Positions 1,415-63,406 of a stretch of DNA of 64,000 bases are shown one piece after another (the first letter of the stretch is position 1; the number at the start of each line of letters is the position of its first letter). Source of the DNA: Rhodosorus marinus CCMP1338 (lineage: Eukaryota > Plantae > Rhodophyta); NCBI GenBank assembly GCA_029953675.1, contig JAMWBK010000011.1, positions 1,054,001 through 1,118,000 on the forward strand, read 5' to 3'. The notes under the pieces were generated by a model. That model did not search any database. It was not told where the DNA came from and saw only the letters and a program-made list of their open reading frames with translations. The position numbers were made by a program, and so were the translations under genes.

Positions 1415-4400
1415 CTAACTCAGCTCTGGATCAGTGAGCGCCCCGCTAAACTGCAGCAACGTGCAAAAGTCAACGAGACATTCGCTGTTTCCTACGTTGT
1501 ATAAGAGCACCTCGTTCGTGATTCCGGCGGCGTCAAAGACCATTTCCTTGTAGCCCCAGTCCCCATAGGGAATCGGAGTAACTGGCCCGAAGGAGTTCTT
1601 GCATAACCTGTTGTTCTGGTAGAGGATCTCCATGGTCAGCGGTCCCGATCCGCGGACATAGCACCGCATTCTGTACCGCTCGTCTCTGCTCAGCCACACA
1701 GTCTGACGAGCGACAGTCTCCGCGGGATAGAGGTACATAGCTCGCACGTTGCGCAGTGGCTGGACTGCGGAAAACTCAAGAGAACCGCTCACAGTCCATC
1801 GAAAATTCCTTTGGGGCTCAAAACTCGGGTTCTTCAGCTCCTGACCGGGCTCTAAAAGTACCGCTGGAGGATCCCATGTCGGGAAATCTGTTGCTAGGTT
1901 GTAAGCTCCCGAACCGACGTAAGGAGGGACCCCGTCAGTAGCGAGATAGAGTGAGCAGTCATCTACCCAGACGCCACCGCTCTGAGCTGCGGGATCACCG
2001 CCATCGTCTCGCTCCAGAACGATCTCATAGTCAGCTGAAAGAAGGATCTCAACGTCAACTTCCTGGTTCTTCCAGTCCGAGTTGTCCACATCGGACGTAT
2101 CTCCCAGATTCTCCGCATACATCGTCGAATCCCTCCAGATCGAAAGCCGGATGCTCCCCTTCACGTAGCAGTGCAATCTGTACACCTGGTTACGGCTCAA
2201 AGAGACGAGTTGTACTGCCTTTGAGCCCTCTTGTGTCAAGCTGAGAGCCTGCGTTCCACTGAAATTTTCAGATCTCGCCGTCTCGGCACCGTCAGAGAAA
2301 GCCCACACCCCAGCGTTCTCTTCGAAACTCGGGTCCGTCAAAAGTGAGTCGTACTCCGGATCCGTCTGTGCTCCCGAGAAAGGGAACAGGGTGCAAAAAT
2401 CGACCACGCACTCGCCGTCTCCGATGTTGTACAGAGATATATTCAGCGCTGCTTTCGTCGCATCAAAAATCACATCCTTGTATCCCCAATTGCCCCTCCC
2501 AATTATCGTCACCGCCCCGAACGAGTTCTTAGATATCCTCTCTCCCTGATAATTAACCTCCATGGTCAGTGACCCAGGTCCACGCACATAACACCTTAGC
2601 CTGTACCTCTCGTTCTGGTCCAAATACACCAACTGCGTTGCAACGGTGTTCGGGTAAACAAACATTGACCGCTCGCCTCTCAATGAGTCAACTACAGTGA
2701 ACTTGAGATCACCGTTCACAGTCCATCGAAAATTCCCCTGGGGCTCAAAACTCGGGTTCCTCAGCTCCTGACCTGACTCTAAAAGTACCGCTGGAGGATC
2801 CCATGTCGGGAGATCTGCTGGTAGGTTGTAAGCTCCCGAACCGACGTAAGGAGGGACCCCATCAGTAGCGAGATAGAGTGAGCAGTCATCTACCCATACG
2901 CCACCGCTCTGAGCTGCGGGATCACCACCATCGTCTCGCTCCAGAACGATCTCATAGTCAGCTGAGAAAAGGATCTCAAAGTCGACTTCCTGGCTCTTCC
3001 AGTCCGAGTTGTCCACATCGAATGTATCTCCCAGATTCTCCGCATACATCGTCGAATCCCTCCAGATCGAAAGCCGGATGCCTCCCTTCACGTAGCAGTG
3101 CAATCTGTACACCTGGTTACGGCTCAAAGAGACGAGTTGTACCGCCTTTGATCCGTCGCGCGTCAAGCTGAGAGCCTGCGTTACACTGAAACTTACAGAT
3201 GTTGCCAGCTCGGCACCGTCAGAGAGAGCCCACACCGCAGCGTCTTCTTCGAAGCTCGGGTCCCTCAAAAGTGAGTCGTACTCCGGATCCGTGAGTGGTC
3301 CCGAGTAAGGGAACAAAGTGCAAAAATCGACAACGCATTCGCTATCTCCGATGTTGTACAGAGATATATCCTGCGCTAGCTTCGTTGCATCATATATCAC
3401 ATCTTTGTATCCCCAGTCGCCTCTTCCGATCGGTGTCACCGCTCCGAACGAGTTCTTCGATATCCTCTCCCCTTGATGAGAAACCTCCATTGTCAACGAT
3501 CCAGGTCCCCGCACGTAACACCTTAGTCTGTACCTCACTTTCTGAGCTAAATATAACGACTGCGTTGCAACGGTGTTCGGGTAAACAAACATTGACCGTT
3601 GGTTCAGCAACGAGTCAATTGCGGTGAACTTGAGATCACCGCTCACAGTCCATCGAAAATTCCCTTGCGGCTCAAAACTCGGGTTCCCGAGCCCTTGACC
3701 TGACTCTAAAAGTACCGCTGGGGGATTCCATGTCGAGAGATCTGTTGGTAGGTTGTACGCACTGGACCCGACGTAAGGAGTGACCCCATCAGTAGCGAGA
3801 TAGAGTGAGCAGTCATCTACCCAGACGTCACCGCTCTGAGCTCCAGGCTCACCACCATCGTCTCGCTCCAGAACGATCTCGTAGTCAGCCGAGAGAAGGA
3901 TCTCAAAGTCGACTTCCTGGTTCTTCCAGTCCGAGTTGTTCACATTGAACGTATCTCTCAGATTGTCGGCATAGATTGTCGAATCACTCCAGATCGAAAG
4001 CCGGATGCCTCCCTTCACGTAGCAGTGCAGTCTGTACGCCTTGTTACGCCTCAAAGAGACGAGTTGTACTGCCTTTGACCCCTCCTGCGTCAAGCTGAGA
4101 GCCTGCGTTCCACTGAAACTTTCAGACGTCACCATCTCGGCACCGTCAGAGAGAGCCCATACCCCAGCGTCTTCTTCGAAGCTCGGGTCCGTCAAAAGTG
4201 AGTCGTACTCCGGATCCGTGAGTGGTCCCGAGAACCGGAACAAAGTGCAAAAATCGACAACGCACTCGCTATCTCCGATGTTATATAGAGATATATCCTG
4301 CGCTACCTTCGTCGCATCAAAAATTACATCTTTGTATCCCCAATCGCCTCTTTCGATCGGCGTCACCGCTCCGAACGAGTTTTTAGATATCCTCTCTCCC

Positions 4401-14207: not shown

Positions 14208-17200
14208 CTACGTCGAAGACAGGTTAATGCTGTAAACACCACAGTCGTCTACGTGGGCGAAGTCATCACTTCGCGTTCTGATAATGAAAAGGAACTTCCC
14301 GTTACCTGGCGCCGTGAATTTTAGGTTTCTCTCCGTCCATTCTCCACTGGACGTCGGAGCCTCACGCTCACCCCTGACCACAAGCGTTTGACCTTTCTGT
14401 ATGTCCATGATCACAGGTGCGTTCCTCCATACCATGCACTGGAAGCGGTATTCAGTTCCGCTCAAAAGCTCAACCCTTTGGAACGCTCCGCTTACGTGTC
14501 TTCTCAACTTAACAGCTCCTGATCCACTTCGTACAATGCGACTCTGGAATATTGCGAGCCCGAAAAGGGTCCAGTGCGTCTCAGATTTAGATTCGAAGCT
14601 TCCATCCGAGAGCAGCTGCACAACAGGCTCCAATGTGGGCTCAGGCGTGGGCACAGGCGTGGGCTCAGGCGTGGGTTCAGGTGTCGGTTCAGGCGTGGGT
14701 TCAGGCGTGGGTTCAGGCGTGGGTTCAGGCGTGGGTTCAGGCGTGGGTTCAGGCGTGGGTTCAGGCGTGGGTTCAGGCGTGGGTTCAGGCGTGGGTTCAG
14801 GCGTGGGTTCAGGCGTGGGTTCAGGCGTGGGTTCAGGCGTGGGTTCTGGCGTGGGTTCAGGCGTGGGTTCAGGTGAGGGCTCAGGTGTCGGCTCAGGTGT
14901 CGGCTCAGGTGTCGGCTCAGGTGTCGGCTCAGGTGTCGGCTCAGGTGTCGGCTCAGGTGTCGGCTCAGGTGTCGGCTCAGGTGTCGGCCCAGGTGTCGGC
15001 TCAGGTGTCGGCTCAGGTGTCGGCTCAGGTGTCGGCTCAGGTGTCGGCTCAGGTGTCGGCTCAGGTGTCGGCTCAGGTGTCGGCTCAGGTGTCGGCTCAG
15101 GTGTCGGCTCAAGTGTCGGTTCAGGTGTCAGCTCAGGTGTTGGTTCAGGTGTCGGCTCCGGAGTGGGTTCTGGCGTCGGCTCTAGTGTCGGTTCCGGCGT
15201 GGGTTCTGGCGTCGGCTCTGGTGTCGGCTCAGGCGTGGGCTCAGGCGTGGGATCAGGGGTGGGCTCAGGCGTGGGCTCAGGCGTGGGTTCAGGTGTCGGT
15301 TCTGGCGTCGGCTCTGGCGTCGGCTCTGGCGTCGGCTCTGGCGTCGGTTCTGGCGTGGGTTCCTGCGTGGGTTCAGGCGTGGGTTCAGGCGTGGGCTCAG
15401 GTGTCGGCTCCGGCGTCGGCTCCTGCGTGGGCTCTGGCGTAATCTCCGGTGTCGGTTCAGGCGTAGGCGCAGACGTCGGCTCCAGTGTCGGTTCAGGCGT
15501 AGGCACAGGCGTCGGTTCAGGCGTAGGCACAGGCGTCGGCTCTGGTGTCGGCTCCGGCGTCGGTTCAGGCGTCGGTTCAAGCGTCGGTTCAGGCGTCGGT
15601 TCAGGCGTAGTCACAGGCGTCGGTTCAGGCGTAGGCACAGGCGTCGGCTCTGGTGTCGGCTCCGGCGTCGGTTCAGGCGTCGGTTCAAGCGTCGGTTCAG
15701 GCGTCGGTTCAGCCGTAGGCACAGGCGTCGGTTCAGGCGTAGGCACAGGCGTCGGCTCTGGTGTCGGCTCCGGCGTCGGTTCAGGCGTCGGTTCAAGCGT
15801 CGGTTCAGGTGTCGGTTCAGGCGTCGGTTCAAGCGTCGGTTCAGGTGTCGGCTCCGGCGTCGGGTCAGGCGTCGGTTCAGGCGTGGGGTCAGCCGTTGGC
15901 TTAGACGTTGGCTCTGGTGTCGGTTCAGGCGTATTGTCGGAAAGCTCCGGATCCGTTAGAGATCCCGAAAAATTGAACAACGTGCAAAAATCGACTATAC
16001 AGTCCCGTTTTCCGATGTTGTAAAGACGAATCTCCTGCGCGATTCCTCCGGCGTCAAACACCATATCCTTGAATCCCCATGAGTCCCGCTCAATTCCCAC
16101 AACCGGGCCATAGGAGTTCTTGGATAGCCTGTTGCCCTTGAAAGTAACTTCCATTGTCAGGGATCCCGGTCCGGATACATAGCATCGCAACCTATACCTC
16201 TCTCCTTTGTTTAAGTAGACAGTCTGATATGCGACGGTACTCGATGCACGGATGTACAGCGCTCGGGAACCATCCAACACATTCAGCGATGTTAGCTCCT
16301 TCGGGCCGCCACTGAAGGCCCACTGAAATTCGTTGTGCGGCGAGAAGCTCGGATTTCTAGTTTCTCCTTTGCCCTGAAGTTCCGCTGGTGGATCCCACGG
16401 AGGTAGCTCCGGCGGGTAGGCGAAGGACTCGGAACCAGCATAGGTTCGCCCTTCTGGAGCAGGATAGAGGGAGCACCCATCCGCCCAGACTTCCGCACTC
16501 TGCGATTCTGGGTTGCCAAAGTTGTCGCGCTCCAAGACGATCTCATACTCACGCGACTCGCGAATTACGAAATCAGCTTCTTGGCTCTCCCAAACCGTGC
16601 CGGGCAAACCAAACGTGTCGGCACGGTTATCTCCGAACAACGTTGAATCGGCCCATACTGAGAAACGAATGCTCCCCCTGACGTAGCAATGTAGTCGATA
16701 AGCCACATTCCTCTCCAAGAACAAGCTCTGAACGGCTTTGGATCCTTCTTGACCAAATCTGAGCCGTCGATTTCCACTGAAACTCGCCGCTGTCTGCATA
16801 TCGGCGCCGTTGGAAAGGGACCAAGCGCCTTGAGCTTCTTCAAAATCTGCGTTTTCCAAAAGCTGCTCAGGCTCCGGATCGGTTCTGGGTCCATCAAATA
16901 GAAACACTGTGCAAAAGTCCACGACAACCTCACTTTCTCCACTGTTATACAGGTACAATTCCTGCGAGATTGCAGACGCGTCAAAGACCATATCCTTGAA
17001 TCCCCATTGAGCCCGTTCAATTGGCACCACAGGATCAAACATGTTCCTAGATACCCTCCTACCCCTAAACCGAACTTCCATTGTCAACGACCCGCTTCCA
17101 GTAACGTAGCATCTCCACCTGTATCTCTTCCCCTTCTCCAAGAAGATCATCTGGCTTGCTACAGTCCTCGCGGGGTAGACTAGCAAGGCTCGCGAACCAT

Positions 17201-37696: not shown

Positions 37697-37752
37697 GGTC
37701 ACTGTCATCCGGTCACCGTCATCCGGTCACCCTCATCCGGTCACCGTCATCC
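37697..37752. repeat. 14-bp tandem repeat x4 (ggtcacYStcatcc)
   Basis: ggtcactgtcatcc / ggtcaccgtcatcc / ggtcaccctcatcc / ggtcaccgtcatcc, directly adjacent. Confidence 0.9.
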
Positions 37753-43370: not shown

Positions 43371-43408
43371 GGGGTGGGGTGGGGTGGGGAGGGGAGGGGA
43401 GGGGAGGG
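43371..43408 (+). other. G-quadruplex-prone run (GGGGT)x3 (GGGGA)x4 GGG
   Basis: Eight G-tracts of 3-4 G separated by single nucleotides. Confidence 0.7.
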
Positions 43409-47425: not shown

Positions 47426-47527
47426 TTATACTATTTCTGGATCTGTTAGTGGGGTGTTTGCGACCACGTAGGGTCAAAGCCAGGGTTGGTGGGCGTTGTC
47501 TATTCGCGATTGGCGGGTCCCAGCAAC
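47426..47527 (-). pseudogene. Relic of gene 6 module B (frameshifted, ~285 bp deleted)
   Basis: Out-of-frame LPVEL / WDPPIANRQR / TNPGFDP is joined directly to ...LTDPEIV*, the family C-terminal motif. Confidence 0.8.
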
Positions 47528-49999
47528 TCAACGGGAAGCTTGAACCTTCTCCGATCCGACGAAGGGGGGCACTTCGGTCGACTTGTAGATCGTACATGAA
47601 TCCACGAACACTCGACCTGCAGTCTTCGGGCTGGCCTTCAGCGAAATCTCGTAGGAACCTCGGTCCCTGCTCCAGAAATCGACCTCCTGTGATCTCCAAG
47701 AAGAGCCTTCGACGGGATCGGTATCCTTCAGATTCTCCGCGTACACTGCGTTCTTCGATCCTACAAGCATGTCAAGTTCCCCCTTCACGACACAGCGCAA
47801 CCTGTAGAGAGTCTTCTCCTTGAGGTGCACCCACTGCGTAGCGCTACCTCCTGGGGCTCCAATCTCGAGCGACTGATCGCCGTTAAACCTCTGCCACTTG
47901 CTCAGGCGAGCTGCTCCACGGAAATTCCACTCCTCCGCTTCGTCTTCAAAGCTGGGATCCTTCAGTCTCTGTCCGTTGTTCGGAATAGGTCTCGTCTTGG
48001 ATTCCTCTCCACCTATTGCGGTGTACTTACACGACTGGTACCCCGGGCTTTTTTCCATTAGACAACACACGTTCCCTCTGCATTCGTCCACTTCAATCAC
48101 CACAGAGCTGATCTTACCTCCCGTGTCGCTGTACTCGAGCGTGACCTCGGCTGGAGAACGCCTCATCATTGTTCGCAGAGGAATCTCTATTACAAAAGTC
48201 CCAAAGGTCACTCTGGAGAACGACGGCTTGGGTCCGGACATACCCGGATCGTAGTCCGCCACTGGGATGCCGTTGATAACCACGACCGGTTTCGACGACA
48301 TCTTGATGGACCTCGAGTGGCTCACTCTGACTTTGGCAACAGCGTCTGGCATCCCTGCGGGCAGGTCGTCGAACAAAAAAGTTGTCCGCGACCACCGGTC
48401 GATCTTTACAGGAGCCTCAATGGAGGCTCCTGTGCGGTTCTTCACGTCCCTGGCATAGTGCCTCGTGCGCCTCACCGTCCTCAGCTCCGCCATCGGGCTG
48501 ATGAAGGTCAGCTCGAGAATCGTCATCGCCTCCGGCTTCAGCGTGACGGACTGAGGAATCGAGGGGAAGGTCGTATTACTCCACATAAACTGCCCAGCCC
48601 GTTTAAGGTTCTGGGCGATGTCAGCTTGCACCAGAGCACGCTCGGCCAACCAGATCCTACGCTCAACCACCTTATCAACCTTCCCGACTCCATACGGCAG
48701 CTTAAGGTTCACCTCATAGCTCCTTGACGTGTCCATATTCTGCAGCAGGATGTACCCCTTGTCAGAATTGGCCACCGCGTGCACTTTAACGTCCGGTTCG
48801 TTCGACGATGAATAGACAAAGTCCCCCTCGACACCCCTCAGCAGCTCAAAGAAATACAACAGAGGTGTTGGCTTGACCCTTCCCCGGGGGCCACCTTCCG
48901 ACAGAGACCATGGGTACCTGTGCTTCCCTTTGTTTCTCTGGTCGTTCGGATCCAGAGTCAAGAAGTTCACTATCTTGAGAACATTGTCGTGTACTCGTAA
49001 CGTGCTCATGAGCACCTTGAAGGCTTCAGTCACGATTCGGAAGTCTCTTCCACCTCGAGGTGGCGCCGCGATGTCCTTGGGGAACCATTGGACTTCGTAG
49101 GAGCTGGATTCCGAGATCATGTACTTGAGTGGCGCCTTCTTCGGACCACTACTCTGTTGGTACGTATACGACTCGAGTAGATCCAAGTTGGCATCCTGAG
49201 CAGCGCCACCGGTGTTATAGACATGCTCGGAGAAGAAATCCAGACATCCAGATCGCTGGGCTTGCTCTATAAACTCCTTGGTACTGCTGAACCTCGCAAA
49301 GTCGTTAAGAAAGGGACTCGCACTGGACGCTGACGGACCGCCGACCAGAACCGAGGGATGTTTTCTGGAGACTGCTTTGCACAGACGCCCGCAGATCTCC
49401 CCGATTCGACGGACGACCGATTGTTCGGTCTCGTTGGGATGGCGCTTGAACTGTCGCCACTTGATTAGGACCTCGTTGAAGCATTCGTAATATCTCGGTT
49501 CTGGGTATCCCGCTTCTTCGCTGAAAAAATAGGTAAAATAGTCCGGAACCATAGAAACGGCCTGCCTAATCATCGATTCGCTTTTGTACAGCTTCTTCAG
49601 AGCAGTGGCTTTGTCGACGACGATCCGATCTTTCGAGATGAACCGTTTCCGGAGATGATCACACGCGGGACACGTCATTATCTTGATCTTATGGGCACCA
49701 TCCGTTCGCATCTTGTCGATTCTGTTGGGGAAATTGCTCGCCCCTAAGGGCGCCTCACTCGCCGATCGACCAAACGAAACCCCCAGCTCATCCAGAACAT
49801 ACTCCATGAGATTTTTTGCATTGCTCGGAGCCGCCGAATTTCCGTGAGCGTTAACGAATCGAACTCGGTCAAACGATTTTTGATCATTCGTATACAGCGA
49901 TGTCCAAAAATCTACTTTCACCTCAACCGCGCCGATTTCCCCAACTATTGATGCACTGAACATCAGTGGCAGAAGAAGAGTCCCCCACTGGCCACCCAT
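47528..49999 (-). CDS. Gene 6: secreted GH86-like hydrolase, module A only (C-terminally truncated), 823 aa
   Basis: ATG, signal peptide, catalytic Glu motifs as CFNEV and MISESS, Cys linker, module A. A premature stop follows GSEKVQ. Confidence 0.88.
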   Translation of the reverse strand: MGGQWGTLLLPLMFSASIVGEIGAVEVKVDFWTSLYTNDQKSFDRVRFVNAHGNSAAPSNAKNLMEYVLDELGVSFGRSASEAPLGASNFPNRIDKMRTDGAHKIKIMTCPACDHLRKRFISKDRIVVDKATALKKLYKSESMIRQAVSMVPDYFTYFFSEEAGYPEPRYYECFNEVLIKWRQFKRHPNETEQSVVRRIGEICGRLCKAVSRKHPSVLVGGPSASSASPFLNDFARFSSTKEFIEQAQRSGCLDFFSEHVYNTGGAAQDANLDLLESYTYQQSSGPKKAPLKYMISESSSYEVQWFPKDIAAPPRGGRDFRIVTEAFKVLMSTLRVHDNVLKIVNFLTLDPNDQRNKGKHRYPWSLSEGGPRGRVKPTPLLYFFELLRGVEGDFVYSSSNEPDVKVHAVANSDKGYILLQNMDTSRSYEVNLKLPYGVGKVDKVVERRIWLAERALVQADIAQNLKRAGQFMWSNTTFPSIPQSVTLKPEAMTILELTFISPMAELRTVRRTRHYARDVKNRTGASIEAPVKIDRWSRTTFLFDDLPAGMPDAVAKVRVSHSRSIKMSSKPVVVINGIPVADYDPGMSGPKPSFSRVTFGTFVIEIPLRTMMRRSPAEVTLEYSDTGGKISSVVIEVDECRGNVCCLMEKSPGYQSCKYTAIGGEESKTRPIPNNGQRLKDPSFEDEAEEWNFRGAARLSKWQRFNGDQSLEIGAPGGSATQWVHLKEKTLYRLRCVVKGELDMLVGSKNAVYAENLKDTDPVEGSSWRSQEVDFWSRDRGSYEISLKASPKTAGRVFVDSCTIYKSTEVPPFVGSEKVQASR

Positions 50000-50949
50000 A
50001 GTTTATGGATACCACCTGACCTCGATCTTCACACTGGTAAAGCACACTCACCCTACAGTTGGCTTGGCACCTACCCACCCGCCTCCTCGAAAGTATGACA
50101 GCACTTTAATAACCTGTACGGGTTCAGAACCAATGTCTTCTAAACCACAGCCTGATCCAGCACCATTGCCCACAATCGAACACGCCATGAATCATCAAGC
50201 AGTCCATTCGTCGATTGATCAGGTTGTCAAGCCACCACCCGAATTATCCCAATCGATATCCCCGATGGTTGCCATCGAACCATCCAATGGAAAAAACACG
50301 AATGTATTCTTGTTACGGCGGGGTGAATCAAAACGGCTATCGCCGAGCAGACAACGCGGGATCCGCGAAAAAACTACCGCATCCACCCGCCCGGGCAATT
50401 CCGATATGTGCGGGCAAGAGTGCCACCATTGCAACTGACAGGGTCTATCCCATTCCAAACGCTAGCGGCAGACGACTTGCGTAAACACCAACCAGCAAAA
50501 GACTATCTCTGCCACATCCTTTTCATAATCAAGATCAAATGTACGGAGTTTGGTGAAGTGAAGCACTGTGTCGAATCTTTCGCACTGTCCAACACTTGAA
50601 TTTCGGGAATACGATGAGGGAGTTCCCATCAAAATTAGGAACAGTTTGTACTAGAATCGAAGCAAGATGTTCTTGATTAGGACTTCTTTCGGAACAGGTT
50701 GGTAGAGGAATGTTCGGAGCATTTGTATAAAATCGGATGAATTCATATTGGCACACTTGTGGAAAACTTGTTTGGCTTGGTTTTAGTGGTTGTTTTTCTG
50801 AAGATCTGGTAGTTGGAGATGTGTAGGGCGACAGGCCTTGGATGGAAGTGCTCAACTGAGTGGGTGAAATCGAAATGAGGATGAAACAGAAAGGTTTTTT
50901 GAGGCGGTGGGAGTTGCTACCCTCCTGAAAACCAGGAGTTGTGGGAATT

Positions 50950-51545
50950 AGTGTTTTCTACTTTTCCAACCGACCGGGGAAGGGATGGATGCTTGCATAA
51001 GTAGAAAGTGATCTACGGGCAGTCCCTGATGAATGAATTTGCTTAAGCGAAACCCTAAAAAAGAACCCCGACGGGAAAAACAGACTAGGCGCGTCGAAGA
51101 TCGCGCGCCTCCAACATCAAAGCAGCGTTCATACTCCACAGCAGGAAGCTTAGAGACGGGTAAACAACGAGAAGAATATGGCCAGGGCGTTCGCGGAACA
51201 ACTCCCGAAGCCAACGAGAGCCAACGAGAGCCAACGGAATCCATAAACCCGAAGCACTCAATGACCATAGGTATGTGTACCAGGCAATGAGCTAAAGCCG
51301 AAGCGTGAACGTCTGGGGAAGACAAAGCCCCCTGCAAAATTCAATTCTTTGCGACTATCGCTAATGACCGGAAGGAGTGTCAACAAAATCCATTTGCAGA
51401 GGACTAATAATGCTCCCAACAAAAAGGGACCTTTTCCACACGTTGGTTGCCATGGGTGCATACCGATATTCCCACTTTAGCAACTTCGAAAAATCGGCTA
51501 CCGTGGCATAGTCCGTTCAACGTCTGTCCCTGTTCTAGTGATCAT
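50950..51545 (+). mobile_element. Degenerate LINE ORF2 fragment (copy upstream of gene 6)
   Basis: ARLQHQSSV...MARAFAEQ, then FNSLRLSLMTG...PNKKGP...IPIFPL (LFN..L..G..P..KKG..RPISL-like). Homologous to 56950-57515 and 59390-59580. Confidence 0.45.
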
Positions 51546-53074: not shown

Positions 53075-53461
53075 TTATCCCATTTCTGGATCTGTTAGTG
53101 TGGTGTTTGCGACCACGTACAGGGTGGAGTAGTAAATAATACTCGGCTGCCAGTGTCTGCATGATTGTAGACGGGTCTAACATCCGCAAACTCGTTGCTT
53201 CGTAGCCTCTTCCCGGCAAAAATAACCTCCGTTGTCGCCGCGGCCGCCGTTCTCATGTACCCACAACACGTGTAACAGCGGGACCTATATTTTCGGCCCT
53301 TCCCCAGGAACACCCTCTGGTATACACCTGCATCCCCAGGCACTAGTCTCACGCCTCTCTGAACTTGGTACGACCGCTCCGCTTCCATCCATCTCGTGAC
53401 TGTGGTTTAAAGTCAGGGTTGGTGATCCTTTGTCCATTCGCGATTGGCGGGTCCGAGCAAC
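53075..53461 (-). pseudogene. Relic of gene 7 module B (several frameshifts)
   Basis: Successive frames read LPDEL / SDPPIANGQRITNPDFKPQSRDGWKRSGRTKFRE / RGVRLVPGDAGVYQRVFLGKGRKYRSRCY...SNEF / PSIIYYSTLYVVANTTLTDPEMG*. These are colinear with intact B modules. Confidence 0.85.
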
Positions 53462-55933
53462 TCATCGGGAAGCCTGAACCTTCTCCGATCCGACGAAGGG
53501 GGGCACTTCGGTCGACTTGTAGATCGTACACGAATCTACGAACACTCGACCTGCATTCTTCGGGCTGGCCTTCAGCGAAATCTCGTAGGAACCCCGGTCC
53601 TTGTTCCAGAAATCGACCTCCTGTGATCTCCAAGAAGAGCCTTCGATGGGATCAGTATTCTTCAGATTCTCCGCGTACACTGCATTCTTCGATCCTACAA
53701 GCATGTCAAGTTCCCCCTTCACGACACAGCGCAACCTGTATAGAGTCTTCTCCTTGAGGTGCACCCACTGCTTAGCGCTACCTCCTGGGGCTCCAATCTC
53801 GAGCGACTGATCGCCGTTAAACCTCTGCCACCTGCTCAGGCGAGCTGCTCCACGGAAATTCCACTCCTCTGCTTCGCCTTCAAAGCTGGGATCCTTCAGT
53901 CTCTGTCCGTTGTTCGGAATAGGTCTCGTCTTGGATTCCTCTCCGTCTATTGCGGTGAACTTACACGACTGGTACCCGGGGCTTTTGTCCATTAGACAAC
54001 ACACGTTCCCTCTGCATTCGTCCACTTCAATCACCACAGAGCTGATCTTACCTCCCGCGTCGCTGTACTCGAGCGTGACCTCGGCTGGAGAACGCCTCTT
54101 CAGTGTTCGCAGAGGAATCTCTATTACAAAAGTCCCAAAGGTCACTCTGGAGAACGACGGCTTGGGTCCGGACATACCCGGATCGTAGTCCGCCACTGGG
54201 ATGCCGTTGATAACCACGACCGGTTTCGGCGACATCTTGATGGACCTCGAGTGGCTCACCCTGACTTTGGCAACAGCGTCTGGCATCCCTGCGGGCAGGT
54301 CGTCGAACAAAAACGTTGTCCGCGACCACCGGCCGATTTTGACAGGAGCCTCAATGGAGGCTCCTCTGCGGTTCTTCACGTCGCTAGCATAGTGCCTCGT
54401 GCGCCTCACCGTCCTCAGCTCCGCCACCGGGCTGATGAAGGTCAGCTCGAGAATCGTCATCGCCTCCGGCTTCAGCGTGACGGACTGCGGAATCGAGGGG
54501 AGGGTCGTATTTCTCCACATAAACTGCCCAGCCCGTTTAAGGTTCTGGGCAATGTCAGCTTGCACCAGAGCACGCTCGGCCAACCAGATCCTACGCTCAA
54601 CCACCTTCTCAACCTTCCCGACTCCATACGGCAGCTTAAGGTTCACCTCATAGCTCCTTGACGTGTCCATATTCTGCAGCAGGATGTACCCCTTGTCAGA
54701 ATTGGCCACCGCGTGCACTTTAACGTCCGGTTCGTTCGATGACGAATAGACAAAGTCCCCCTCGACACCCCTCAGCAGCTCAAAGAAATACAACAGAGGT
54801 GTTGGCTTGACCCTTCCCCGGGGGCCACCTTCCGACAGAGACCATGGGTACCTGTGCTTCCCTTTGTTTCTCTGGTCGTTCGGATCCAGAGTCAAGAAGT
54901 TCACTATCTTGAGAACATTGTCGTGTACTCGTAACGTGCTCATGAGCACCTTGAAGGCTTCAGTCACGATTCGGAAGTCTCTTCCACCTCGAGGTGGCGC
55001 CGCGATGTCCTTGGGGAACCATTGGACTTCATAGGAGCTGGATTCCGAGATCATGTACTTGAGTGGCGCCTTCTTCGGACCACTACTCTGTTGGTACGTA
55101 TACGACTCGAGTAGATCCAAGTTGGCATCCTGAGCAGCGCCACCGGTGTTATAGACATGCTCGGAGAAGAAATCCAGACATCCAGATCGCTGGGCTTGCT
55201 CTATAAACTCCTTGGTACTGCTGAACCTCGCAAAGTCGTTAAGAAAGGGCCTCGCACTGGACGCTGACGGACCGCCGACCAGAACCGAGGGGTGTTTTCT
55301 GGAGACTGCTTTGCATATACGCCCGCAGATCTCCCCGATTCGACGGACGACCGATTGTTCGGTCTCGTTGGGATGGCGCTTGAACTGTCGCCACTTGATT
55401 AGGACCTCGTTGAAGCATTCGTAGTATCTCGGCGCCGGGTATCCCGCTTTTTCGCTGAAAAAATAGGTAAAATAGTCCGGAACCATAGAAACGGCCTGCC
55501 TAATCATCGATTCGCTTTTGTACAGCTTCTTCAGAGCAGTGGCTTTATCGACGACGATCCGATCTTTCGTGATGAACCGCTTCCGGAGATGATCACATGA
55601 GGGACACGTCATTATCTTGATCTTATGGGCACCATCCGTTCGCATCTTGTCGATTCTGTTGGGGAAATTGCTCGCCCCTAGGGGCGCCTCATTCGCCGAT
55701 CGACCAAACGCAACCCCCAGCTCATCCAGAACATACTCCATGAGATTTTTTGCATTGCTCGGAGCCGCCGAATTTCCGTGAGCGTTAACGAATCGAGCTC
55801 TGTCAAACGATTTCTGATCATTCGTATACAGCGATGTCCAAAAATCTACTTTCACCTCAACCGCGCCGATCTCCCCAACTATTGATGCACTGAACATCAA
55901 TGGCAGAAGAAGAATCCCCCACTGGCCACCCAT
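53462..55933 (-). CDS. Gene 7: secreted GH86-like hydrolase, module A only, 823 aa; recent duplicate of gene 6
   Basis: About 30 aa differences from gene 6 counted by eye (~96% identity). Same truncation point (KVQASR*). Confidence 0.88.
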   Translation of the reverse strand: MGGQWGILLLPLMFSASIVGEIGAVEVKVDFWTSLYTNDQKSFDRARFVNAHGNSAAPSNAKNLMEYVLDELGVAFGRSANEAPLGASNFPNRIDKMRTDGAHKIKIMTCPSCDHLRKRFITKDRIVVDKATALKKLYKSESMIRQAVSMVPDYFTYFFSEKAGYPAPRYYECFNEVLIKWRQFKRHPNETEQSVVRRIGEICGRICKAVSRKHPSVLVGGPSASSARPFLNDFARFSSTKEFIEQAQRSGCLDFFSEHVYNTGGAAQDANLDLLESYTYQQSSGPKKAPLKYMISESSSYEVQWFPKDIAAPPRGGRDFRIVTEAFKVLMSTLRVHDNVLKIVNFLTLDPNDQRNKGKHRYPWSLSEGGPRGRVKPTPLLYFFELLRGVEGDFVYSSSNEPDVKVHAVANSDKGYILLQNMDTSRSYEVNLKLPYGVGKVEKVVERRIWLAERALVQADIAQNLKRAGQFMWRNTTLPSIPQSVTLKPEAMTILELTFISPVAELRTVRRTRHYASDVKNRRGASIEAPVKIGRWSRTTFLFDDLPAGMPDAVAKVRVSHSRSIKMSPKPVVVINGIPVADYDPGMSGPKPSFSRVTFGTFVIEIPLRTLKRRSPAEVTLEYSDAGGKISSVVIEVDECRGNVCCLMDKSPGYQSCKFTAIDGEESKTRPIPNNGQRLKDPSFEGEAEEWNFRGAARLSRWQRFNGDQSLEIGAPGGSAKQWVHLKEKTLYRLRCVVKGELDMLVGSKNAVYAENLKNTDPIEGSSWRSQEVDFWNKDRGSYEISLKASPKNAGRVFVDSCTIYKSTEVPPFVGSEKVQASR

Positions 55934-56949
55934 AGTTTATGGATACCACCTGACCTCGATCTTCACACTGGTAAAGCACACTCACCCGACGGTTGGCTTG
56001 GCACCTACCCACCCGCCTCCTCGGAAATATGACGCCGCTTTAATAACCTCTACGGGTTCAGAACCAATGCCTTCTAGACCACAGCCTCTCCAGCACCAAT
56101 GCTCACAATCGGACACGCAATGGATTATCAGGCAGTCCATTCGTCGATTGATCAGGTTGTCAAATCACGACAATAATTATCCCAATCGATCTCCCCGATG
56201 GCTGCCATGGAACCAGCCAATGAAAAAACACGAAGGTATTCTTGTTGCGGCGCGGTGAATCAAAACGGCTATCGGTCGCGCACACAACGTGGGTTCGGTA
56301 CAAAAATTAAAGCATCCAACCACCCTGGCAATGCCGATATGTACGGGCAAGAGTGCCACCACTGCAACTGACAGGGTCTATCCCAATCCAAACGCCAGGG
56401 CAGACGACTTGTGTGAACACCAACCAGCAAAAGACTAACTGCCACATCCTTTTCATAATTAAGATCGAATGTACGGAGTTTGGTGAAGTGAAGCACTGTG
56501 TCGAATCTTTCACACCCCGTCCAATACTTGAATTTCGGGAATACGATGAGAGAGTTCGCAATCGAAATTAGGAAAAGCTCGTACTAGAATTAAAGCAAGA
56601 TGTTCTTGATTAGGAGTTCTTTCGCAACAGGTCGGTAGAGGAATATTTGGGGCATTTGAATAAAAAAGGATGAATTTATATTTGCCGCACCTGTGGAAAA
56701 ATTTGTTTGGCTTAGTTTTGGTGGTTGTTTAGGGGAAGATCTGGTAGTTGGAGATGTAGGGCGACAGGCCTTGGATGGAAGTGCTCAACCGAGTGGGTGA
56801 AATCGAAATGAGGATGAAACAGAAAGGTTTTTTTGGGGCGGTGGGAGTTGCTACCCTCCTGAAAACCAGGTGTGGGAATTGGTGTTTTCTACTTTCCAAA
56901 CGAATGGGAAGAGACGCTTGCAATAAGTAGAAAGTGATCAACGGCTGTC

Positions 56950-57515
56950 CCTGATGAATGAACTTGCTTAATCGGAACCCTAAAAAAGAACCCCGACGGG
57001 ACAAAAAAGGACTAGGCGCGTCGAAGATCGCGCGCCTCCAACATCAAAGCTGCGTTCAGACGCCACGGCAGGAAGCTTAGAGACGGGTAAATAACGAGAA
57101 GAATATGGTCAAGGCGTTCGCGGAACAACTCCCGAAGCCAACGAGAGCCAACGAGAGCCAACGGAATCCATAAACCCAAAGCACTCGATGACCAGAGGTA
57201 TGTGTACCAGGCAATGAGCTAAAGCCGAAGCGTGAATGTCTGGGGAAGACAAAGGGCCCTGCAAAATTCAATTCTTTGCGACTATCGCTGATGACCGGAA
57301 GGAGTGTCAACAGAATCCTTTTTCAGAGCACTAATAATGGTCACCAACAAAAAGGGACCCTTTCCAAACGTTGGTTGCCTGGGGCGCGTATCGATATTAC
57401 CACTCCCTTCAAATCCTAAATATTCCCACGTGAATAACATGAACAACAGACTTCGAAAAATCGGCCACCCTTGGGATAGTCCGTACAACATCTCTCCCTG
57501 TTCAACAGTGACCAT
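56950..57515 (+). mobile_element. Degenerate LINE ORF2 fragment (copy upstream of gene 7)
   Basis: Duplicate of 50950-51545, including the agccaacgag x3 micro-repeat. Confidence 0.45.
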
Positions 57516-58658: not shown

Positions 58659-58736
58659 TGTGGCGACGATCTACTCGGAGTCCTTGTGGCGACGATCTAC
58701 TCAAAAGTCCCTGTGGCGGCGGTCTACTCAGCAACC
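58659..58736. repeat. 26-27-bp tandem repeat x3 (tgtggcgRcgRtctactc...)
   Basis: Units start at 58659, 58685 and 58712. Confidence 0.85.
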
Positions 58737-60445: not shown

Positions 60446-63406
60446 TCACAGCTCAGGATCTGTTGCTCGGATACCAGCCACTAGATGCAAACTGCAAAAG
60501 TCCAAGTAACAGCTTCCCTTGCCACTCGGGGAAACTGTCAGGCTGAAAGAATTCCTTCTGGTTTCAAAAATGATGTCCTTGAAAACCCACTGCCGTCCAC
60601 CTCTCACGGCCGCGAGCTTCACCGGGCCAAACTCATTCTTGGACACCAGGACATCCGCATGTGACACTTTCATCACGAAGGGAAACGCCTTTGTTGCGTA
60701 ACATCGAAACCTGTACATCGTTCTACCCTGTAAGTAGATTCGCTGTGTTGCTTCCGCCCCCCCACGCAGCTCCAAACCGCGCCTGCCCTCTAGGAAGATG
60801 TCTTCACGATACTTGTACGATCCAGAAATCTTCCATCTGAACGGAGAAATATCCTCAAAGCCTGGATTGATAATGAGCTGAGGCCCGCCTTGGCTCAAAT
60901 ACGGTGACGGATTCCATACCTCTTGAGCTGGCGGTTGCGTCAATATCGACGATCCAACGTATCGAGGTAGACTACCCGATGGATACAAAGTGCACGTGTC
61001 CACGTACGTTGGGCCGGTCAAACCACCAAGGTCGTCCCTGTATACAGCCGCAGTGTAGAATCCAGTCTCACGCACACGATAATCCAACTCAAGTGACTCC
61101 CAGTTGGGACTCGGAATCGGGAGGAGCTTGGCCTCGTTGTGAGCAAATACGACGGACTCGGATTCTATCGCGAGATGCACGGGCCCAGTAACTGCGCAGT
61201 GAAATCGATACAAGACCCCCGCTTTCAGGTAGACCCGCTGTCTGGCTGCTGCAGTGCGGATTCCGAGCTGCAGGCCGCGGTATCCTCGATGGGCCGCGGC
61301 TGGCAATAGGTAACATCCGGCGCTCAGCTCCCAGAGCTGCTTCGTGTTTTCTTCAAAACTTGGATCCTTGATAACTTGTTGCGTCAGTGGGATCGGTCTC
61401 TCCCATCGCGTCAGAGCAGGGGTTCGATTTGAGCACCGAACGGGTGTCGATCTTCCCGGCAAAAGGCAACACGCGCCATTAGTACATCTCTCGACCTCCA
61501 GGGTGATTGTACTAAGGAATCCACCGCTGTCCGGGTACTGAACGGCAACCTGGGGACTTTTCTCGAGGTTGAGCTGTGCGAGTTCATATGGAACAATGAT
61601 GACTCCAAAGTAGGAGCTGCTGTACGTGCGCTTCGGTCCAGCCAAATTGTGGTTCCGAACGGGTACAGAGACGCCGTTGATCCACACCTTGGGGGCTTGG
61701 GCTCTCCTTAAAGTCCTGGAGTGAGCGATTCGAACGTACACCATTCCCAAACGAGACTTTGGTACGTTGTTGAAGAAGACGTTGATCGTTTCTCCCTCCT
61801 TGATCGGCACTGGAAACTCCACCTCGTTCTTCGCTTCGTCCTGAATGCTTTCCATCATATGCCTCGAGCGCAACACCTTTCTCACGTTTACCAGCGGCTT
61901 TGCAAACGTGAGTTCGAGCACAGTCATGGCGCGCGGAAACACCAAAACACTGGACGGCATCGTGTCCAGTGTCCGGTTTGTCCAGCGCATGTCCCCACCC
62001 CGTAGAAGATTCTGTTGCATCTCCTGGCCGGTTCGGTGCTTCCGCAGCAGCCAAATCTTCCGCTCAACGACTTTTAGGACCGGCGCTAAGCCGGTTGGAA
62101 ATCTCAAGTCGACAGTTTCGGCGTTTTTCCTGCTGAGATTCTGTAACATGATGTAACCCTTGTCTCGATTGGCGACAGCGTGCACGGCCAGGTTGGGCGT
62201 GTTGGAGTAGGAGTACACGAAGTCGCCCTCGATGCCTTTCAAGAGCTCAAAGTACTTCACCAAAGGCGTCCATTTTTGCTTCCTGTCTTTGCCGCCCTCA
62301 GTCAATGCCCACGGATACCTGTTCCAGTGGTTACACCTGCGATCGTTTGGGTCGAGGATCAGAAACGGAATGATCTTGAGGACGCTATCGTGGATTCTTA
62401 GCGTGCTCATGAACGCGCTGAAAGCCTCTGAAAGGATAAAAAAGTCGCGACTATTCAGGGGTTTGGCAGATATATAGTGCTCCTTGTTGTACCACCGGGT
62501 GTCATAGCCCCCAGATTCTGTAATCATATACTTGAACGGAGCAGATCGGTTGGCGTGGTAGAAGTAGTTCTCCAGAAGGTCCAGGTTGGCGTCTTGAACC
62601 GCCCCACCGGTGTTGTAAACATGCTCGGAGAAGAAGCTCAGACATCCTGCTTTCAAAGCGTTGTCGATGAAGTTCTTCGTGCGCACGCGCCAGCGGTCAA
62701 AGTCATCCTGATCTGGTCTTGCCGTCGCCGCAGCTGGACCTCCAACCATGAAAAAATTATCTTTCGATGTCACGCTCGCACAGAATCGACCAGTAATCTC
62801 GCCAAGTCTCGCTACCACGCTCTCTTGCTTCTCATTGGGGAGCTTGAAGTCCCTAGACCTTGTAAACGGCTCGTTGAAAGTCTCGATGTACTTTGGCGGA
62901 GGATACCCTTCCTCCGCGTTGAAAAAGTATTCAAGAAACTTCGGAACCCATTTTGCCGCAGCCTCAATTCGGCTTGGTGGATCATAGAACTTTTCAATCA
63001 CATCGGCCTTGTCGACTGCTACTCGATCAGAGCTAAGAAACCGTTTCTCCAACGGATCGCACAATCTACAGGTTGTCCTTTTAGCAAATAATATCCCGTC
63101 TTCAACTGCAGAATCCATTCGGTTCGGGAAGTTGTCAGACGCGCCGAACGCGCCCTCACCGGCTGACCGACCAAACTGCACCCCCAGGTCATCCATTACG
63201 TATTCCATCATCTCCCGAGCGTTCGCTGGAGAACCGCTATTCCCATGGGCTTGGACAAACCGTGCACGGCTAAAATCCCGCTTTTCGTTCGTGACCAACG
63301 TCGCCCAAAAGTCGACCGTCACCGTCGCCCCCATGGCTCCGGAACTCAGAACCAACACCGCGGTGAGGACACCCACCAGAGCTCCCACACAGTTCCTTGG
63401 TTTCAT
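60446..63406 (-). CDS. Gene 8: secreted GH86-like hydrolase with one A-B module pair, 986 aa
   Basis: ATG, long signal peptide, TFNEP and [16 protein letters not shown], Cys linker, modules A and B, ending ATDPEL like genes 1 and 2. Confidence 0.9.
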   Translation of the reverse strand: MKPRNCVGALVGVLTAVLVLSSGAMGATVTVDFWATLVTNEKRDFSRARFVQAHGNSGSPANAREMMEYVMDDLGVQFGRSAGEGAFGASDNFPNRMDSAVEDGILFAKRTTCRLCDPLEKRFLSSDRVAVDKADVIEKFYDPPSRIEAAAKWVPKFLEYFFNAEEGYPPPKYIETFNEPFTRSRDFKLPNEKQESVVARLGEITGRFCASVTSKDNFFMVGGPAAATARPDQDDFDRWRVRTKNFIDNALKAGCLSFFSEHVYNTGGAVQDANLDLLENYFYHANRSAPFKYMITESGGYDTRWYNKEHYISAKPLNSRDFFILSEAFSAFMSTLRIHDSVLKIIPFLILDPNDRRCNHWNRYPWALTEGGKDRKQKWTPLVKYFELLKGIEGDFVYSYSNTPNLAVHAVANRDKGYIMLQNLSRKNAETVDLRFPTGLAPVLKVVERKIWLLRKHRTGQEMQQNLLRGGDMRWTNRTLDTMPSSVLVFPRAMTVLELTFAKPLVNVRKVLRSRHMMESIQDEAKNEVEFPVPIKEGETINVFFNNVPKSRLGMVYVRIAHSRTLRRAQAPKVWINGVSVPVRNHNLAGPKRTYSSSYFGVIIVPYELAQLNLEKSPQVAVQYPDSGGFLSTITLEVERCTNGACCLLPGRSTPVRCSNRTPALTRWERPIPLTQQVIKDPSFEENTKQLWELSAGCYLLPAAAHRGYRGLQLGIRTAAARQRVYLKAGVLYRFHCAVTGPVHLAIESESVVFAHNEAKLLPIPSPNWESLELDYRVRETGFYTAAVYRDDLGGLTGPTYVDTCTLYPSGSLPRYVGSSILTQPPAQEVWNPSPYLSQGGPQLIINPGFEDISPFRWKISGSYKYREDIFLEGRRGLELRGGAEATQRIYLQGRTMYRFRCYATKAFPFVMKVSHADVLVSKNEFGPVKLAAVRGGRQWVFKDIIFETRRNSFSLTVSPSGKGSCYLDFCSLHLVAGIRATDPEL

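Follow-up and report, generated by a model that had tools for sequence, protein, structure and literature searches.

Investigation of a 64,000-nt stretch of the genome of the red alga Rhodosorus marinus CCMP1338 (the window in what follows) revealed eight genes of the glycoside hydrolase family GH86, which belong to a larger cluster comprising at least 11 nuclear, intron-free GH86 genes. The encoded proteins appear to be secreted and combine a GH86 part with a variable number of putative glycan-binding modules, and we consider it probable that this cluster, presumably of single bacterial origin, serves to remodel the alga's own sulfated, galactose-containing matrix. GH86 is usually regarded as belonging to bacteria that degrade seaweeds; here the family is nuclear, large, expressed and expanded in tandem, and its host is an alga from a polymer-making lineage, which reverses the usual roles.

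Cluster organization and genomic context

The window contains eight uninterrupted open reading frames of 823–2543 aa on the minus strand, numbered g1 to g8 by position and spanning positions 1415–63406 (Table 1). A preliminary description of this DNA had eight co-oriented paralogs of a eukaryote filling the window and possibly continuing past its right edge. Number, orientation and outer limits (first stop at 1415, last start at 63406) are exact, the host is indeed a eukaryote, the cluster sitting within the 1.44-Mb nuclear contig JAMWBK010000011.1 (GCA_029953675.1) of the alga, and past the right edge the cluster goes on with three more GH86 genes (g9, g10, and g11), but the genes do not fill the window: coding sequence accounts for 48% of it, and the intergenic spacers, which have a lower G+C content, measure 3.3–5.2 kb. 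Over a 13.6-kb overlap, the window and contig JAMWBK010000011.1 are 100% identical.

At least 16 GH86 copies are present per R. marinus genome, and a paralog outside the cluster has XPG, Cpn10, cyclin, and zinc-finger genes as its neighbors. No introns were detected over the 43.9 kb of cluster coding sequence, the genome average being approximately three introns per gene. Over the N-terminal ~680 aa, pairwise identity among the eight genes is 42–68%, with g6 and g7 at 96%. Regarding the genes beyond the window, g9 (658 aa) has a GH86 part without any carbohydrate-binding module (CBM), and g10 and g11 are giants like g1 and g2, these four genes carrying 7–12 CBM modules each.

Table 1. Coordinates of GH86 genes and associated features in the window (positions in nt of the window; residue numbers in aa; domain assignments as predicted from sequence and models).
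Feature	Position	Strand	Description
g1	1415..9046	-	2543 aa; signal-like leader, GH86 core aa ~36-650, Cys-rich knot C651...C669, 12 CBM_4_9-type modules; Pfam matches BPA_C, Porphyrn_cat_1, CBM_4_9
g1 CBM array	1418..7009	-	six ~309-aa CBM-A/CBM-B di-modules; linkers L-T-D-P-E
g1 E306 codon	8129..8131	-	predicted nucleophile, motif I-T-E-T-G
g1 E186 codon	8489..8491	-	predicted acid/base, motif F-N-E-P
g2	14208..20780	-	2190 aa; leader, GH86 core, 6 CBM modules, long Pro/Thr/Glu linker, 1 terminal CBM
g2 linker	14638..15932	-	12-nt unit x108 (TRF), encodes (T-P-E-P)n, ~430 aa
g3	24063..26996	-	977 aa; leader 1-24, (beta/alpha)8 barrel, beta-sandwich 1 405-519, beta-sandwich 2 543-637, Cys knot 640-660, CBM-A 674-813, CBM-B 842-977
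g4	32194..35142	-	982 aa; GH86 + CBM-A + CBM-B
g5	39342..42293	-	983 aa from first ATG; GH86 + CBM-A + CBM-B
Tandem duplication copy 1	47476..51476		g6 + 1.5 kb upstream
g6	47528..49999	-	823 aa; GH86 + CBM-A only
CBM-B remnant	53170..53461	-	decayed, frameshifted, directly past g7 stop codon; tblastn + three-frame translation
Tandem duplication copy 2	53409..57404		g7 + 1.5 kb upstream
g7	53462..55933	-	823 aa; GH86 + CBM-A only; recent g6 duplicate
g8	60446..63406	-	986 aa; GH86 + CBM-A + CBM-B

Assignment to family GH86

The window proteins are true GH86 proteins. The Pfam family BPA_C (PF18040) exceeded its cut-off in each of the eight window genes as well as in g9–g11, while Porphyrn_cat_1 (PF18206, cut-off 27) was above it in g1, g3, g5, g6, g7, and g11, just under it in g2 (21.0), g4 (26.6), g8 (16.5), and g10 (22.7), and not listed for g9 at E ≤ 0.001. 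None of the NCBIfam models matched. The solved bacterial members of the family are the beta-agarase BuGH86 of Bacteroides uniformis (5TA0/5TA1/5TA5), the beta-porphyranase BpGH86A of Bacteroides plebeius (4AW7) and the beta-agarase Aga86A_Wa (8H97). A phmmer search with g3 as the query detected all three (BuGH86, 2e-17; BpGH86A, 2.6e-12; Aga86A_Wa, 9e-12), as did a profile of the eight genes run against the PDB (1e-30, 1.5e-26, and 2.5e-27, respectively), and no other PDB family matched either g3 or the eight-gene profile at E ≤ 0.001. Identity to characterized GH86 enzymes is 18–27%.

The family had been assigned as GH86-like in the preliminary description, which named GH39, GH5, and GH79 as places where a better match might be found. 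The best HMM and the best structural matches are both GH86, and the nearest other families of clan GH-A are far weaker; GH39 was rejected, having left a Pfam trace of only 14 bits, in g1.

Fold and catalytic residues

Comparison of an AlphaFold model of g3 (pLDDT 77.9) with the PDB using Foldseek returned the three solved GH86 proteins as the top seven matches (TM by target 0.81–0.85, E 8e-40 to 1e-33, ~640–670 aligned columns). The first non-GH86 match came only at 2e-18, its E-value 15 orders of magnitude higher, and GH30, GH51, and GH79-like (heparanase-like) barrels, at E-values of 1e-16 to 1e-11 and at least 15 orders weaker than GH86, were rejected. In the model, the GH86 part begins with a (beta/alpha)8 barrel, to which two beta-sandwich (Ig-like) domains are joined on the C-terminal side. 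This three-domain fold is common to the bacterial and the algal proteins, together with the N-E-P acid/base motif, the S/T-E nucleophile motif and the Pfam domains.

Both putative catalytic glutamates were found to be kept in every gene, in agreement with what had first been noticed, down to the two residues named for g1: the glutamates of the motifs N-E-P/V (E186 in g1) and T/S-E-S/T/A (E306 in g1) are invariant in g1–g8, and the pair is also present in g9–g11. E186 of g1 aligns with the NEP motif of BuGH86, Aga86A_Wa, and BpGH86A. E306 of g1 and E294 of g3 occupy one alignment column, and in the phmmer alignment E294 of g3 is placed opposite E322 of BuGH86, the column being E in 5ta1 and Q in 5ta0, which is the BuGH86 nucleophile mutant E322Q (PMC5849685). 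For BuGH86, T82 and M396 have been named as residues of the -2 subsite. On the basis of these alignments, E186 and E306 of g1 are predicted to be the acid/base and the nucleophile.

The algal proteins differ from the characterized bacterial GH86 enzymes in a barrel-adjacent loop that is 10 residues shorter and in a four-Cys knot past the catalytic region, and given the low identity and the shorter loop, the catalytic cleft may differ as well. It is conceivable that the substrate is not a galactan and that these proteins have a new GH86 specificity, for example for a xylose- or uronic acid-containing backbone of red-microalgal heteropolymers, a reading that draws on the identity of only 18–27% to characterized members, the loop deletion and Cys knot that are the subfamily's own, the strong divergence of the paralogs and the reported matrix composition (Glc/Gal/Xyl/GalA). 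We regard this as quite improbable, as galactose is a main matrix sugar, the barrel is covered over its whole length by the HMM and structural alignments, and no change is seen in the catalytic motifs.

Carbohydrate-binding modules, duplication and selection

A total of 29 CBM modules, mutually homologous by jackhmmer, are present in the window, with 0–12 CBM_4_9-type modules per enzyme across the cluster. CBM_4_9 (PF02018) was above its cut-off in g1 (82.8 bits, five stretches), g2 (44.2), and g11 (44.7), and sub-threshold in g5 (17.5). A model of a CBM di-module (pLDDT 76.7) consists of two beta-sandwiches (jelly-rolls), and its Foldseek matches include the CBM22 tandem 4XUP and, as a weak match, the porphyran-binding CBM 8XMZ (TM by target 0.69, rank 49); by sequence, the CBM pair gave marginal PDB matches only (best E 1e-4). 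By Pfam and this model, the C-terminal modules are of the CBM_4_9 type with a jelly-roll fold and are putative glycan binders. The fold and an N-P-S-F-E-type start are common to the algal modules and those of the CBM_4_9 clan (CBM4/9/16/22/61 types), and tandem pairing is common to them and the CBM22-1/CBM22-2 pair of 4XUP. The alternating A/B di-module, the one disulfide predicted in each module and the six-fold amplification were seen in none of the other proteins examined. The (T-P-E-P)n linker of g2 is probably an extended, O-glycosylated spacer.

Regarding duplication, the two copies that contain g6 and g7 are 94% identical overall (97.3% in the coding sequence and 91% in the flank), with a dN/dS of 0.28 between the two genes, and di-modules 3–5 of g1 have a nucleotide identity of 88–94% and a dN/dS of 0.16–0.27. 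These values show tandem duplication with the copies under purifying selection.

The selection acting on the CBM repeats, the extreme module numbers of g1, g2, g10, and g11 and the long Pro/Thr spacers would also fit proteins that are mainly transglycosylases or matrix organizers, which would cut and re-join chains in the manner of plant XTH, with the giants cross-linking or scaffolding the mucilage; the retaining mechanism of clan GH-A permits such transglycosylation. Against this reading, both catalytic glutamates are retained in every copy, including the CBM-less g9, and no GH86 member is known as a transglycosylase, sequence giving no means of telling transfer from hydrolysis. This reading seems rather improbable to us, and hydrolytic remodeling of the alga's own matrix is preferred.

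Leaders and cysteines

A hydrophobic N-terminal leader was detected in all eight proteins, ending just ahead of a conserved V-x-V-D-F that marks the start of the mature domain across the window genes; this hydropathy check bears out the signal peptide that had been ascribed to each of them, and no later transmembrane-like segments were detected by hydropathy in g1–g8. The cysteines of the knot and of each CBM are conserved. Judging from the leaders and the protein sequences, the proteins are presumably secreted, with a eukaryotic-style signal peptide instead of the lipoprotein or T9SS ending of bacterial GH86 proteins.

Transcripts and public gene models

Lack of expression, which according to the preliminary description would speak against such a system, is not what was found: full-length orthologous MMETSP transcripts, which derive from other R. 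marinus strains and not from CCMP1338, exist for the lineages of g1, g3, g6/g7, g8, and g9, with 81–92% identity across the five lineages. Transcript P0003 is 82% identical to g1, P0001 and P0002 are 89% and 85% identical to g3, full length and colinear, P0005 is 87% identical to g7 with equal length and end, and P0004 is 81% identical to g8. For the lineages of g2, g4, and g5, transcript matches were missing or limited to truncated gene models.

Regarding public gene models, the GenBank-derived model P0164 covers the last 248 aa of g4 only, P0162 the last 335 aa of g5 only and the GenBank model NDN08_007292 (P0163) the last 336 aa of g8 only. The public annotation of the region consists of C-terminal fragments only, and the GH86 catalytic domains of the window are absent from public protein sets; exact full-length g3, g6, and g8 were not found in public protein records because the public gene models are truncated. 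The cluster will escape CAZyme surveys that rely on the deposited proteome.

Fragmentary public gene models, intron-free genes and bacterial relatives could together suggest an artefact, be it bacterial contamination, misassembly or dead genes. This is extremely improbable, given that the genes lie inside the 1.44-Mb nuclear contig, have spacers of 3–5 kb without bacterial-style gene packing, are matched by full-length MMETSP transcripts in other R. marinus strains and have reading frames open for up to 2543 codons with a dN/dS of 0.28, and that the T9SS or lipoprotein ends found in bacterial relatives have no resemblance to the signal leaders, Pro/Thr linkers and Cys patterns of the algal proteins.

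Relatives and origin

Word-indexed protein searches detected few relatives, and an exhaustive profile search gave 414 database relatives, approximately 30 of them named; the named non-algal relatives are Bacteroidota and Verrucomicrobiota of marine agarolytic-type taxa, and one bacterial relative sits in a GH2-sulfatase-GH16-GH2-GH86 locus. The read set SRR22824290 yielded three further homologs (P0010, P0015, and P0016). In a distance-based, unrooted neighbor-joining tree of 470 columns, 26 red-algal sequences (Rhodosorus, Bangiopsis, and one further read set) were monophyletic in 100 of 100 bootstraps against 132 other top hits, and the eight window genes and their orthologs grouped together in 79 of 100. 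The 10-residue loop deletion is present in 24 of the 26 algal sequences and in none of the 132 others.

An old bacterial transfer followed by tandem duplication is suggested, because the coding sequences of the cluster are without introns in an intron-rich genome, and from taxon distribution and this lack of introns we infer that transfer was from bacteria to alga. Full-text literature searches detected no paper on algal GH86 and no characterized orthologous family, in line with the earlier designation of the system as a candidate undescribed one.

Proposed function

Regarding bond specificity, substrate and physiological role, we infer the following. The family would have entered an ancestor of the Stylonematophyceae once, from marine bacteria, and later grown through tandem duplication. 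The signal peptide would take each protein into the ER, disulfides of the four-Cys knot after the catalytic region and of one Cys pair per CBM would stabilize it, and it would be delivered to the extracellular matrix. There the enzyme would use the retaining double-displacement mechanism of clan GH-A, with the N-E-P glutamate (g1 E186) as the acid/base and g1 E306 as the nucleophile, and its target, if it works as beta-agarases and beta-porphyranases do, would be beta-galactosidic bonds within a galactan backbone. The 0–12 C-terminal CBM_4_9-type jelly-rolls, some on Pro/Thr-rich spacers, would hold the enzyme on the polysaccharide, and the 7–12 modules of the giants g1, g2, g10, and g11 could provide high-avidity binding or anchoring in the matrix. 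The diverged copies may each be directed at regions of different substitution in the sulfated, galactose-containing wall or mucilage that the alga itself produces, with possible roles in loosening the wall, releasing daughter cells and turning over mucilage.

What has been reported for Rhodosorus is a sulfated heteropolymer of Glc, Gal, Xyl, and GalA, not a classical agar or porphyran; the substrate precedent of GH86 may therefore not carry over. We tentatively raise the possibility, doubtful as it is in its full extent, that these are the first eukaryotic GH86 enzymes, forming a new subfamily whose natural substrate is the complex sulfated heteropolysaccharide of unicellular red algae, for which we know of no defined degrading enzyme. 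If this were true, the cluster would be a dedicated multi-enzyme system of bacterial ancestry for wall loosening and mucilage processing, its hydrolases tethered to the matrix by multivalent CBM arrays, and would provide the first enzymatic tools for dissecting red-microalgal exopolysaccharides.

Members of this algal class often live on red seaweeds, and the enzymes could instead act on foreign agars and porphyrans of such hosts, or of seaweeds whose exudates the alga meets, in attachment, penetration or sugar uptake (osmotrophy). All characterized GH86 enzymes degrade agarose or porphyran, the polymer reported for Rhodosorus is not agar-like, and the porphyran-binding 8xmz, at rank 49 with a TM by target of 0.69, is among the structural neighbors of the CBMs. 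A precedent exists in the heterotrophic cryptomonad Goniomonas avonlea, whose agarase-like GH50 gene, with a secreted product, has been interpreted as serving digestion in a predator (PMC6260743). This is likewise a eukaryotic nuclear gene of an agarase family with a signal peptide, but it belongs to another family, is a single copy, and its host is not a polysaccharide-producing alga. Action on foreign substrates is nevertheless unlikely: R. marinus is a phototroph in unialgal culture, where the MMETSP orthologs are transcribed without seaweed substrate, the match to 8xmz is weak, and a family of at least 16 diverged copies, with as many as 12 binding modules, is more suggestive of a matrix system than of scavenging. 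Remodeling of the alga's own matrix is the reading we retain.

Comparison with known systems

The algal GH86 genes have a eukaryotic nuclear host, number at least 16 per genome with a tandem cluster, and have up to 12 CBM_4_9-type modules and Pro/Thr spacers added, whereas bacterial genomes have 1–4 GH86 genes in a polysaccharide utilization locus with sulfatases, GH2, and GH16. Chondrus crispus makes a beta-porphyranase of its own, CcGH16-3, which has bacterial ancestry and a measured activity (Manat et al., 2022; PMC9771727), and the red-algal GH16 enzymes, which are explained by one bacterial transfer into a red-algal ancestor and subsequent duplication, are proposed to act on the alga's own matrix (PMC9771727). 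Common to the two cases is a red-algal hydrolase whose family is otherwise typically found in marine bacteria that degrade galactans. They differ in fold, GH16 being a beta-jelly roll and the algal GH86 a predicted TIM barrel, and in copy number, with three GH16 copies in macroalgae and a large tandem expansion of GH86, known here from sequence, in a unicell. Next to GH16, the GH86 cluster would be a second and independent instance in which red algae acquired matrix hydrolases from the bacteria that consume them.

To our knowledge, the loosening, turnover and shedding of the sulfated matrix in red algae are largely unexplained, and we know of no candidate enzymes for unicellular red algae. The cluster makes this question testable with a handful of recombinant proteins, and enzymes that cut red-microalgal exopolysaccharides would be useful for structural work on these commercially used polymers.

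Other features of the window

No tRNA genes and no Rfam families at the gathering threshold were detected in the window, and Pfam gave no match at E ≤ 0.01 for the ten intergenic ORFs of greatest length, among them the two that reach the ends of the window. No common upstream motif in seven independent promoter regions was above shuffled controls, and none of ten Met-to-stop fragments of g1 that were looked up is on record in public databases. Pfam lines for Filamin, MAM, Gmad1, Peptidase_C36, and others in g1 were rejected as summed noise from the 12 repeats, with zero significant stretches each. The first ATG of g5 is at 42293, and its ORF is open from a GTG at 42311, the listed start. An anomaly in G+C and AT skew at 14–16 kb of the window is caused by the 12-nt linker repeat of g2.

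Assignment of the window genes to GH86

All eight window genes (g1 to g8) encode proteins that match BPA_C (PF18040) above the Pfam cut-off, and Porphyrn_cat_1 (PF18206) is over its cut-off in g1, g3, g5, g6, and g7 and slightly under it in g2, g4, and g8. A PDB-wide sequence search matched the three solved GH86 proteins only, BuGH86 (E = 2e-17 with g3 alone and 1e-30 with an eight-gene profile), BpGH86A (2.6e-12 and 1.5e-26) and Aga86A_Wa (9e-12 and 2.5e-27). The seven best Foldseek PDB matches of an AlphaFold model of g3 (pLDDT 77.9) were all GH86 entries, BpGH86A among them, with target TM-scores of 0.81-0.85 and E-values of 8e-40 to 1e-33, the next match being at 2e-18. The first ~680 residues of g1 to g8 align throughout (42-68% identity between proteins), and both putative catalytic glutamates named in the preliminary description, in N-E-P (g1 E186) and T/S-E (g1 E306), are invariant; the g3 equivalent of the latter, E294, aligns with the nucleophile mutated in BuGH86 E322Q (PMC5849685), where the mutant entry 5TA0 carries Q and 5TA1 carries E. 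Based on these sequence matches, the fold and the catalytic residues, the earlier assignment to a GH86-like family holds for all eight genes, with activity predicted.

Full-text literature searches on GH86 in red algae, eukaryotes, and Rhodosorus returned bacterial work only and no already characterised orthologous family, which the preliminary description had named as counting against it; the paper on the R. marinus CCMP1338 nuclear assembly (PMC10250338) is silent on glycoside hydrolases, on porphyranase and on the cluster genes. What is new is that an already known enzyme family occurs in another kingdom, where its domain architecture and its genomic organisation are new as well.

Cluster extent and public gene models

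As had been guessed, the array runs beyond the right edge of the window, where three more GH86 ORFs (g9 to g11) were detected in the flanking sequence (record JAMWBK010000011.1, 1,118,001-1,145,381), g10 and g11 being arranged tail to tail with 0.9 kb between them. Window and right flank together contain at least 11 GH86 genes in ~88 kb of this nuclear contig of 1,442,050 bp. Short proteins encoded by the window, recovered with the CBM pair as query, map to this contig, and the locus of one of them matches window 64000-50446 at 100% identity over its positions 7745-21299, which places the window at 1,054,001-1,118,000 of JAMWBK010000011.1 in assembly GCA_029953675.1. More diverged paralogues are present on other contigs (KAJ8904124.1, KAJ8904075.1, KAJ8900832.1, and KAJ8905636.1), and one off-cluster paralogue is flanked by XPG, Cpn10, cyclin and zinc-finger genes.

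Features of the GH86 cluster (window numbering unless stated; aa, amino acids)
Feature	Position	Strand	ORF product	Modules after the core	Public model
g1	1415-9046	minus	2543 aa	12 (six A/B pairs)	
g2	14208-20780	minus	2190 aa	6 + 1, separated by a (TPEP)n stretch (12-nt unit repeated 108 times)	
g3	24063-26996	minus	977 aa	2	
g4	32194-35142	minus	982 aa	2	32194-33000, last 248 aa
g5	39342-42311	minus	989 aa from GTG; 983 aa from first ATG at 42293	2	39342-40350, last 335 aa
g6	47528-49999	minus	823 aa	1	
g7	53462-55933	minus	823 aa	1	53462-53992, last 176 aa
g8	60446-63406	minus	986 aa	2	60446-61750, last 336 aa
g9	65185-67161 (window-equivalent)	same as g1-g8	658 aa	none	none
g10	1,130,147-1,135,381 (record)	opposite	1744 aa		KAJ8901447.1, first 447 aa missing
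g11	1,136,277-1,142,048 (record)	minus	1923 aa		
Window-end open frames	1-345; 63512-63997	minus; plus			
Dispersed repeat	51103-51304; 57030-57231; 59393-59575				
Minisatellites	37690-37752; 58654-58730				
Type B remnant, g7	53170-53461	minus			
Type B remnant, g6	compare 47400-47527				
Spacers downstream of g6; g7	43202-44250; 51542-52749				

Within the window, the eight paralogues are co-oriented as described, but they do not fill it, coding sequence amounting to 48%. The spacers between g1 and g8 are 3.3-5.2 kb long with 44-47% G+C, compared with ~52% in the genes, and no tRNA, Rfam family or ORF with a Pfam match was detected in the window spacers. The open frames at the window ends, having neither a Pfam match nor similarity to the GH86 genes, are probably non-coding. 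A dispersed repeat of ~200 bp (~70% identity) is present in three spacers, and there are two small intergenic minisatellites with units of 14/28 nt and 26 nt.

Regarding public gene models, the GenBank (BRAKER) models for g4, g5, g7, and g8 are C-terminal fragments only, one of them with a doubtful intron. Because of this, the full cluster proteins have no exact database record and the cluster catalytic domains are missing from public protein sets; with partial or missing models for g4, g5, and g7 to g10, CAZyme counts from the deposited R. marinus proteome will be too low. UniProt and GenBank names are automatic only, examples being "hypothetical protein" and "Beta-porphyranase A C-terminal domain-containing protein".

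Leader and binding modules

Each of the eight proteins has an N-terminal hydrophobic segment ending right ahead of a conserved V-x-V-D-F, in line with the signal peptides claimed earlier and here predicted from sequence, and no further membrane-like segments were found after this leader. The second beta-sandwich is followed by an invariant four-cysteine motif (D-E-C-x-G-x-x-C-C-L-L...C) and then by homologous modules of ~135 aa, alternating between types A and B, with two conserved cysteines each. Their Pfam label is CBM_4_9 (82.8 bits in g1), and sequence matches to solved CBMs were marginal. A modelled A/B pair (pLDDT 76.7) consists of two jelly-rolls; among structures it is closest to tandem CBM-like pairs, with the porphyran-binding CBM 8XMZ at rank 49 (target TM 0.69). 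Leader, cysteine pattern and Pro/Thr spacers would fit extracellular proteins.

Possible function

The genes belong to GH86, have competent catalytic residues, are under constraint and have transcribed orthologues. Characterised GH86 enzymes cleave agarose or porphyran, and the R. marinus enzymes possibly act on foreign agars; the polysaccharide reported from Rhodosorus is a sulfated Glc/Gal/Xyl/GalA polymer, and a new specificity is possible, as is a mode of action by transglycosylation. We consider it moderately probable that they act on the alga's own galactose-containing matrix, a reading favoured by the number of copies, by their multivalent binding modules and by expression when the alga is grown in unialgal culture, with Chondrus CcGH16-3 taken as a precedent for such action.

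Relatives and origin

The best protein matches of the window genes were R. marinus transcripts (81-89% identity), and P0157, the orthologous transcript of g9, is 92% identical to it. Searched exhaustively with a profile, a set of 1.84 billion representative proteins yielded 414 relatives at E<=0.001, the top ones all from Rhodosorus, Bangiopsis sp. CCMP1999 (same class) and read set SRR22824290, followed by bacterial ones (Marinoscillum, Flammeovirga, and Lentimonas); the bacterial assembly GCA_947492285.1 has a homologue in a GH2-sulfatase-GH16-GH2-GH86 locus, and a separate search added Polaribacter atrinae. In a neighbour-joining tree (158 sequences, 470 columns), 26 algal sequences form one clade (100/100 bootstraps); g1 to g8 group with their orthologues (79/100), g1 with g2 (100/100) and g3 with g4 (99/100). 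A loop of 11 residues is common to 24 of the 26 algal sequences and has 17-32 residues in all others. The two long-loop algal sequences, P0111 (an R. marinus MMETSP0011 transcript) and P0021 (a read-set sequence), have a bacterial-type loop of 21 residues and Gly/Asp-rich linkers, and may be early-branching paralogues older than the loop deletion.

The 8,392 genes of the R. marinus genome contain 24,821 introns in total, yet there is no intron in the 43.9 kb of cluster coding sequence. Such an intron-free cluster in an intron-rich genome, considered along with the taxon distribution, speaks for a single, old transfer out of marine bacteria and subsequent local duplication; since the tree was built from distances and has no root, the direction from bacteria to alga is one that we infer. 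Given the intron-rich genome, 5' UTR introns are possible in g1 to g8; the 5' splice site-like GGTGAGT occurs in four of seven independent regions (590 nt upstream of the starts), roughly as often as chance would give in shuffled sequence. Another three diverged homologues (P0010, P0015, and P0016) lie on gene-poor SRR22824290 Logan contigs (L002, L004, and L005), and precomputed annotation gives two of the three a match to Porph_assoc (PF27624), a family that did not come up for the window proteins.

Duplication of g6 and g7

The proteins of g6 and g7 are 96% identical and stem from a recent 5.9-kb tandem duplication (CDS 97.3% identical, flank 91%, dN/dS 0.28); the other GH86 copies are old. 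Both stop codons fall within the linker between type A and type B modules, and a decayed, frameshifted type B remnant (W-D-P-P...N-P-D-F, then ...Y-Q-R-V-F-L-G-K-G-R-K-Y-R-S-R-C-Y) lies immediately 3' of the g7 stop, with only ~25 codons left in g6. P0005, the transcript orthologue of g6 and g7, ends at the same residues, which indicates that the truncation is old and that the one-module form would be the functional one. The spacers downstream of g6 and g7 are 77-82% alike outside the 94%-identical 4-kb unit, suggesting an older, larger duplication of which the gene-plus-promoter part was homogenised later, possibly by gene conversion.
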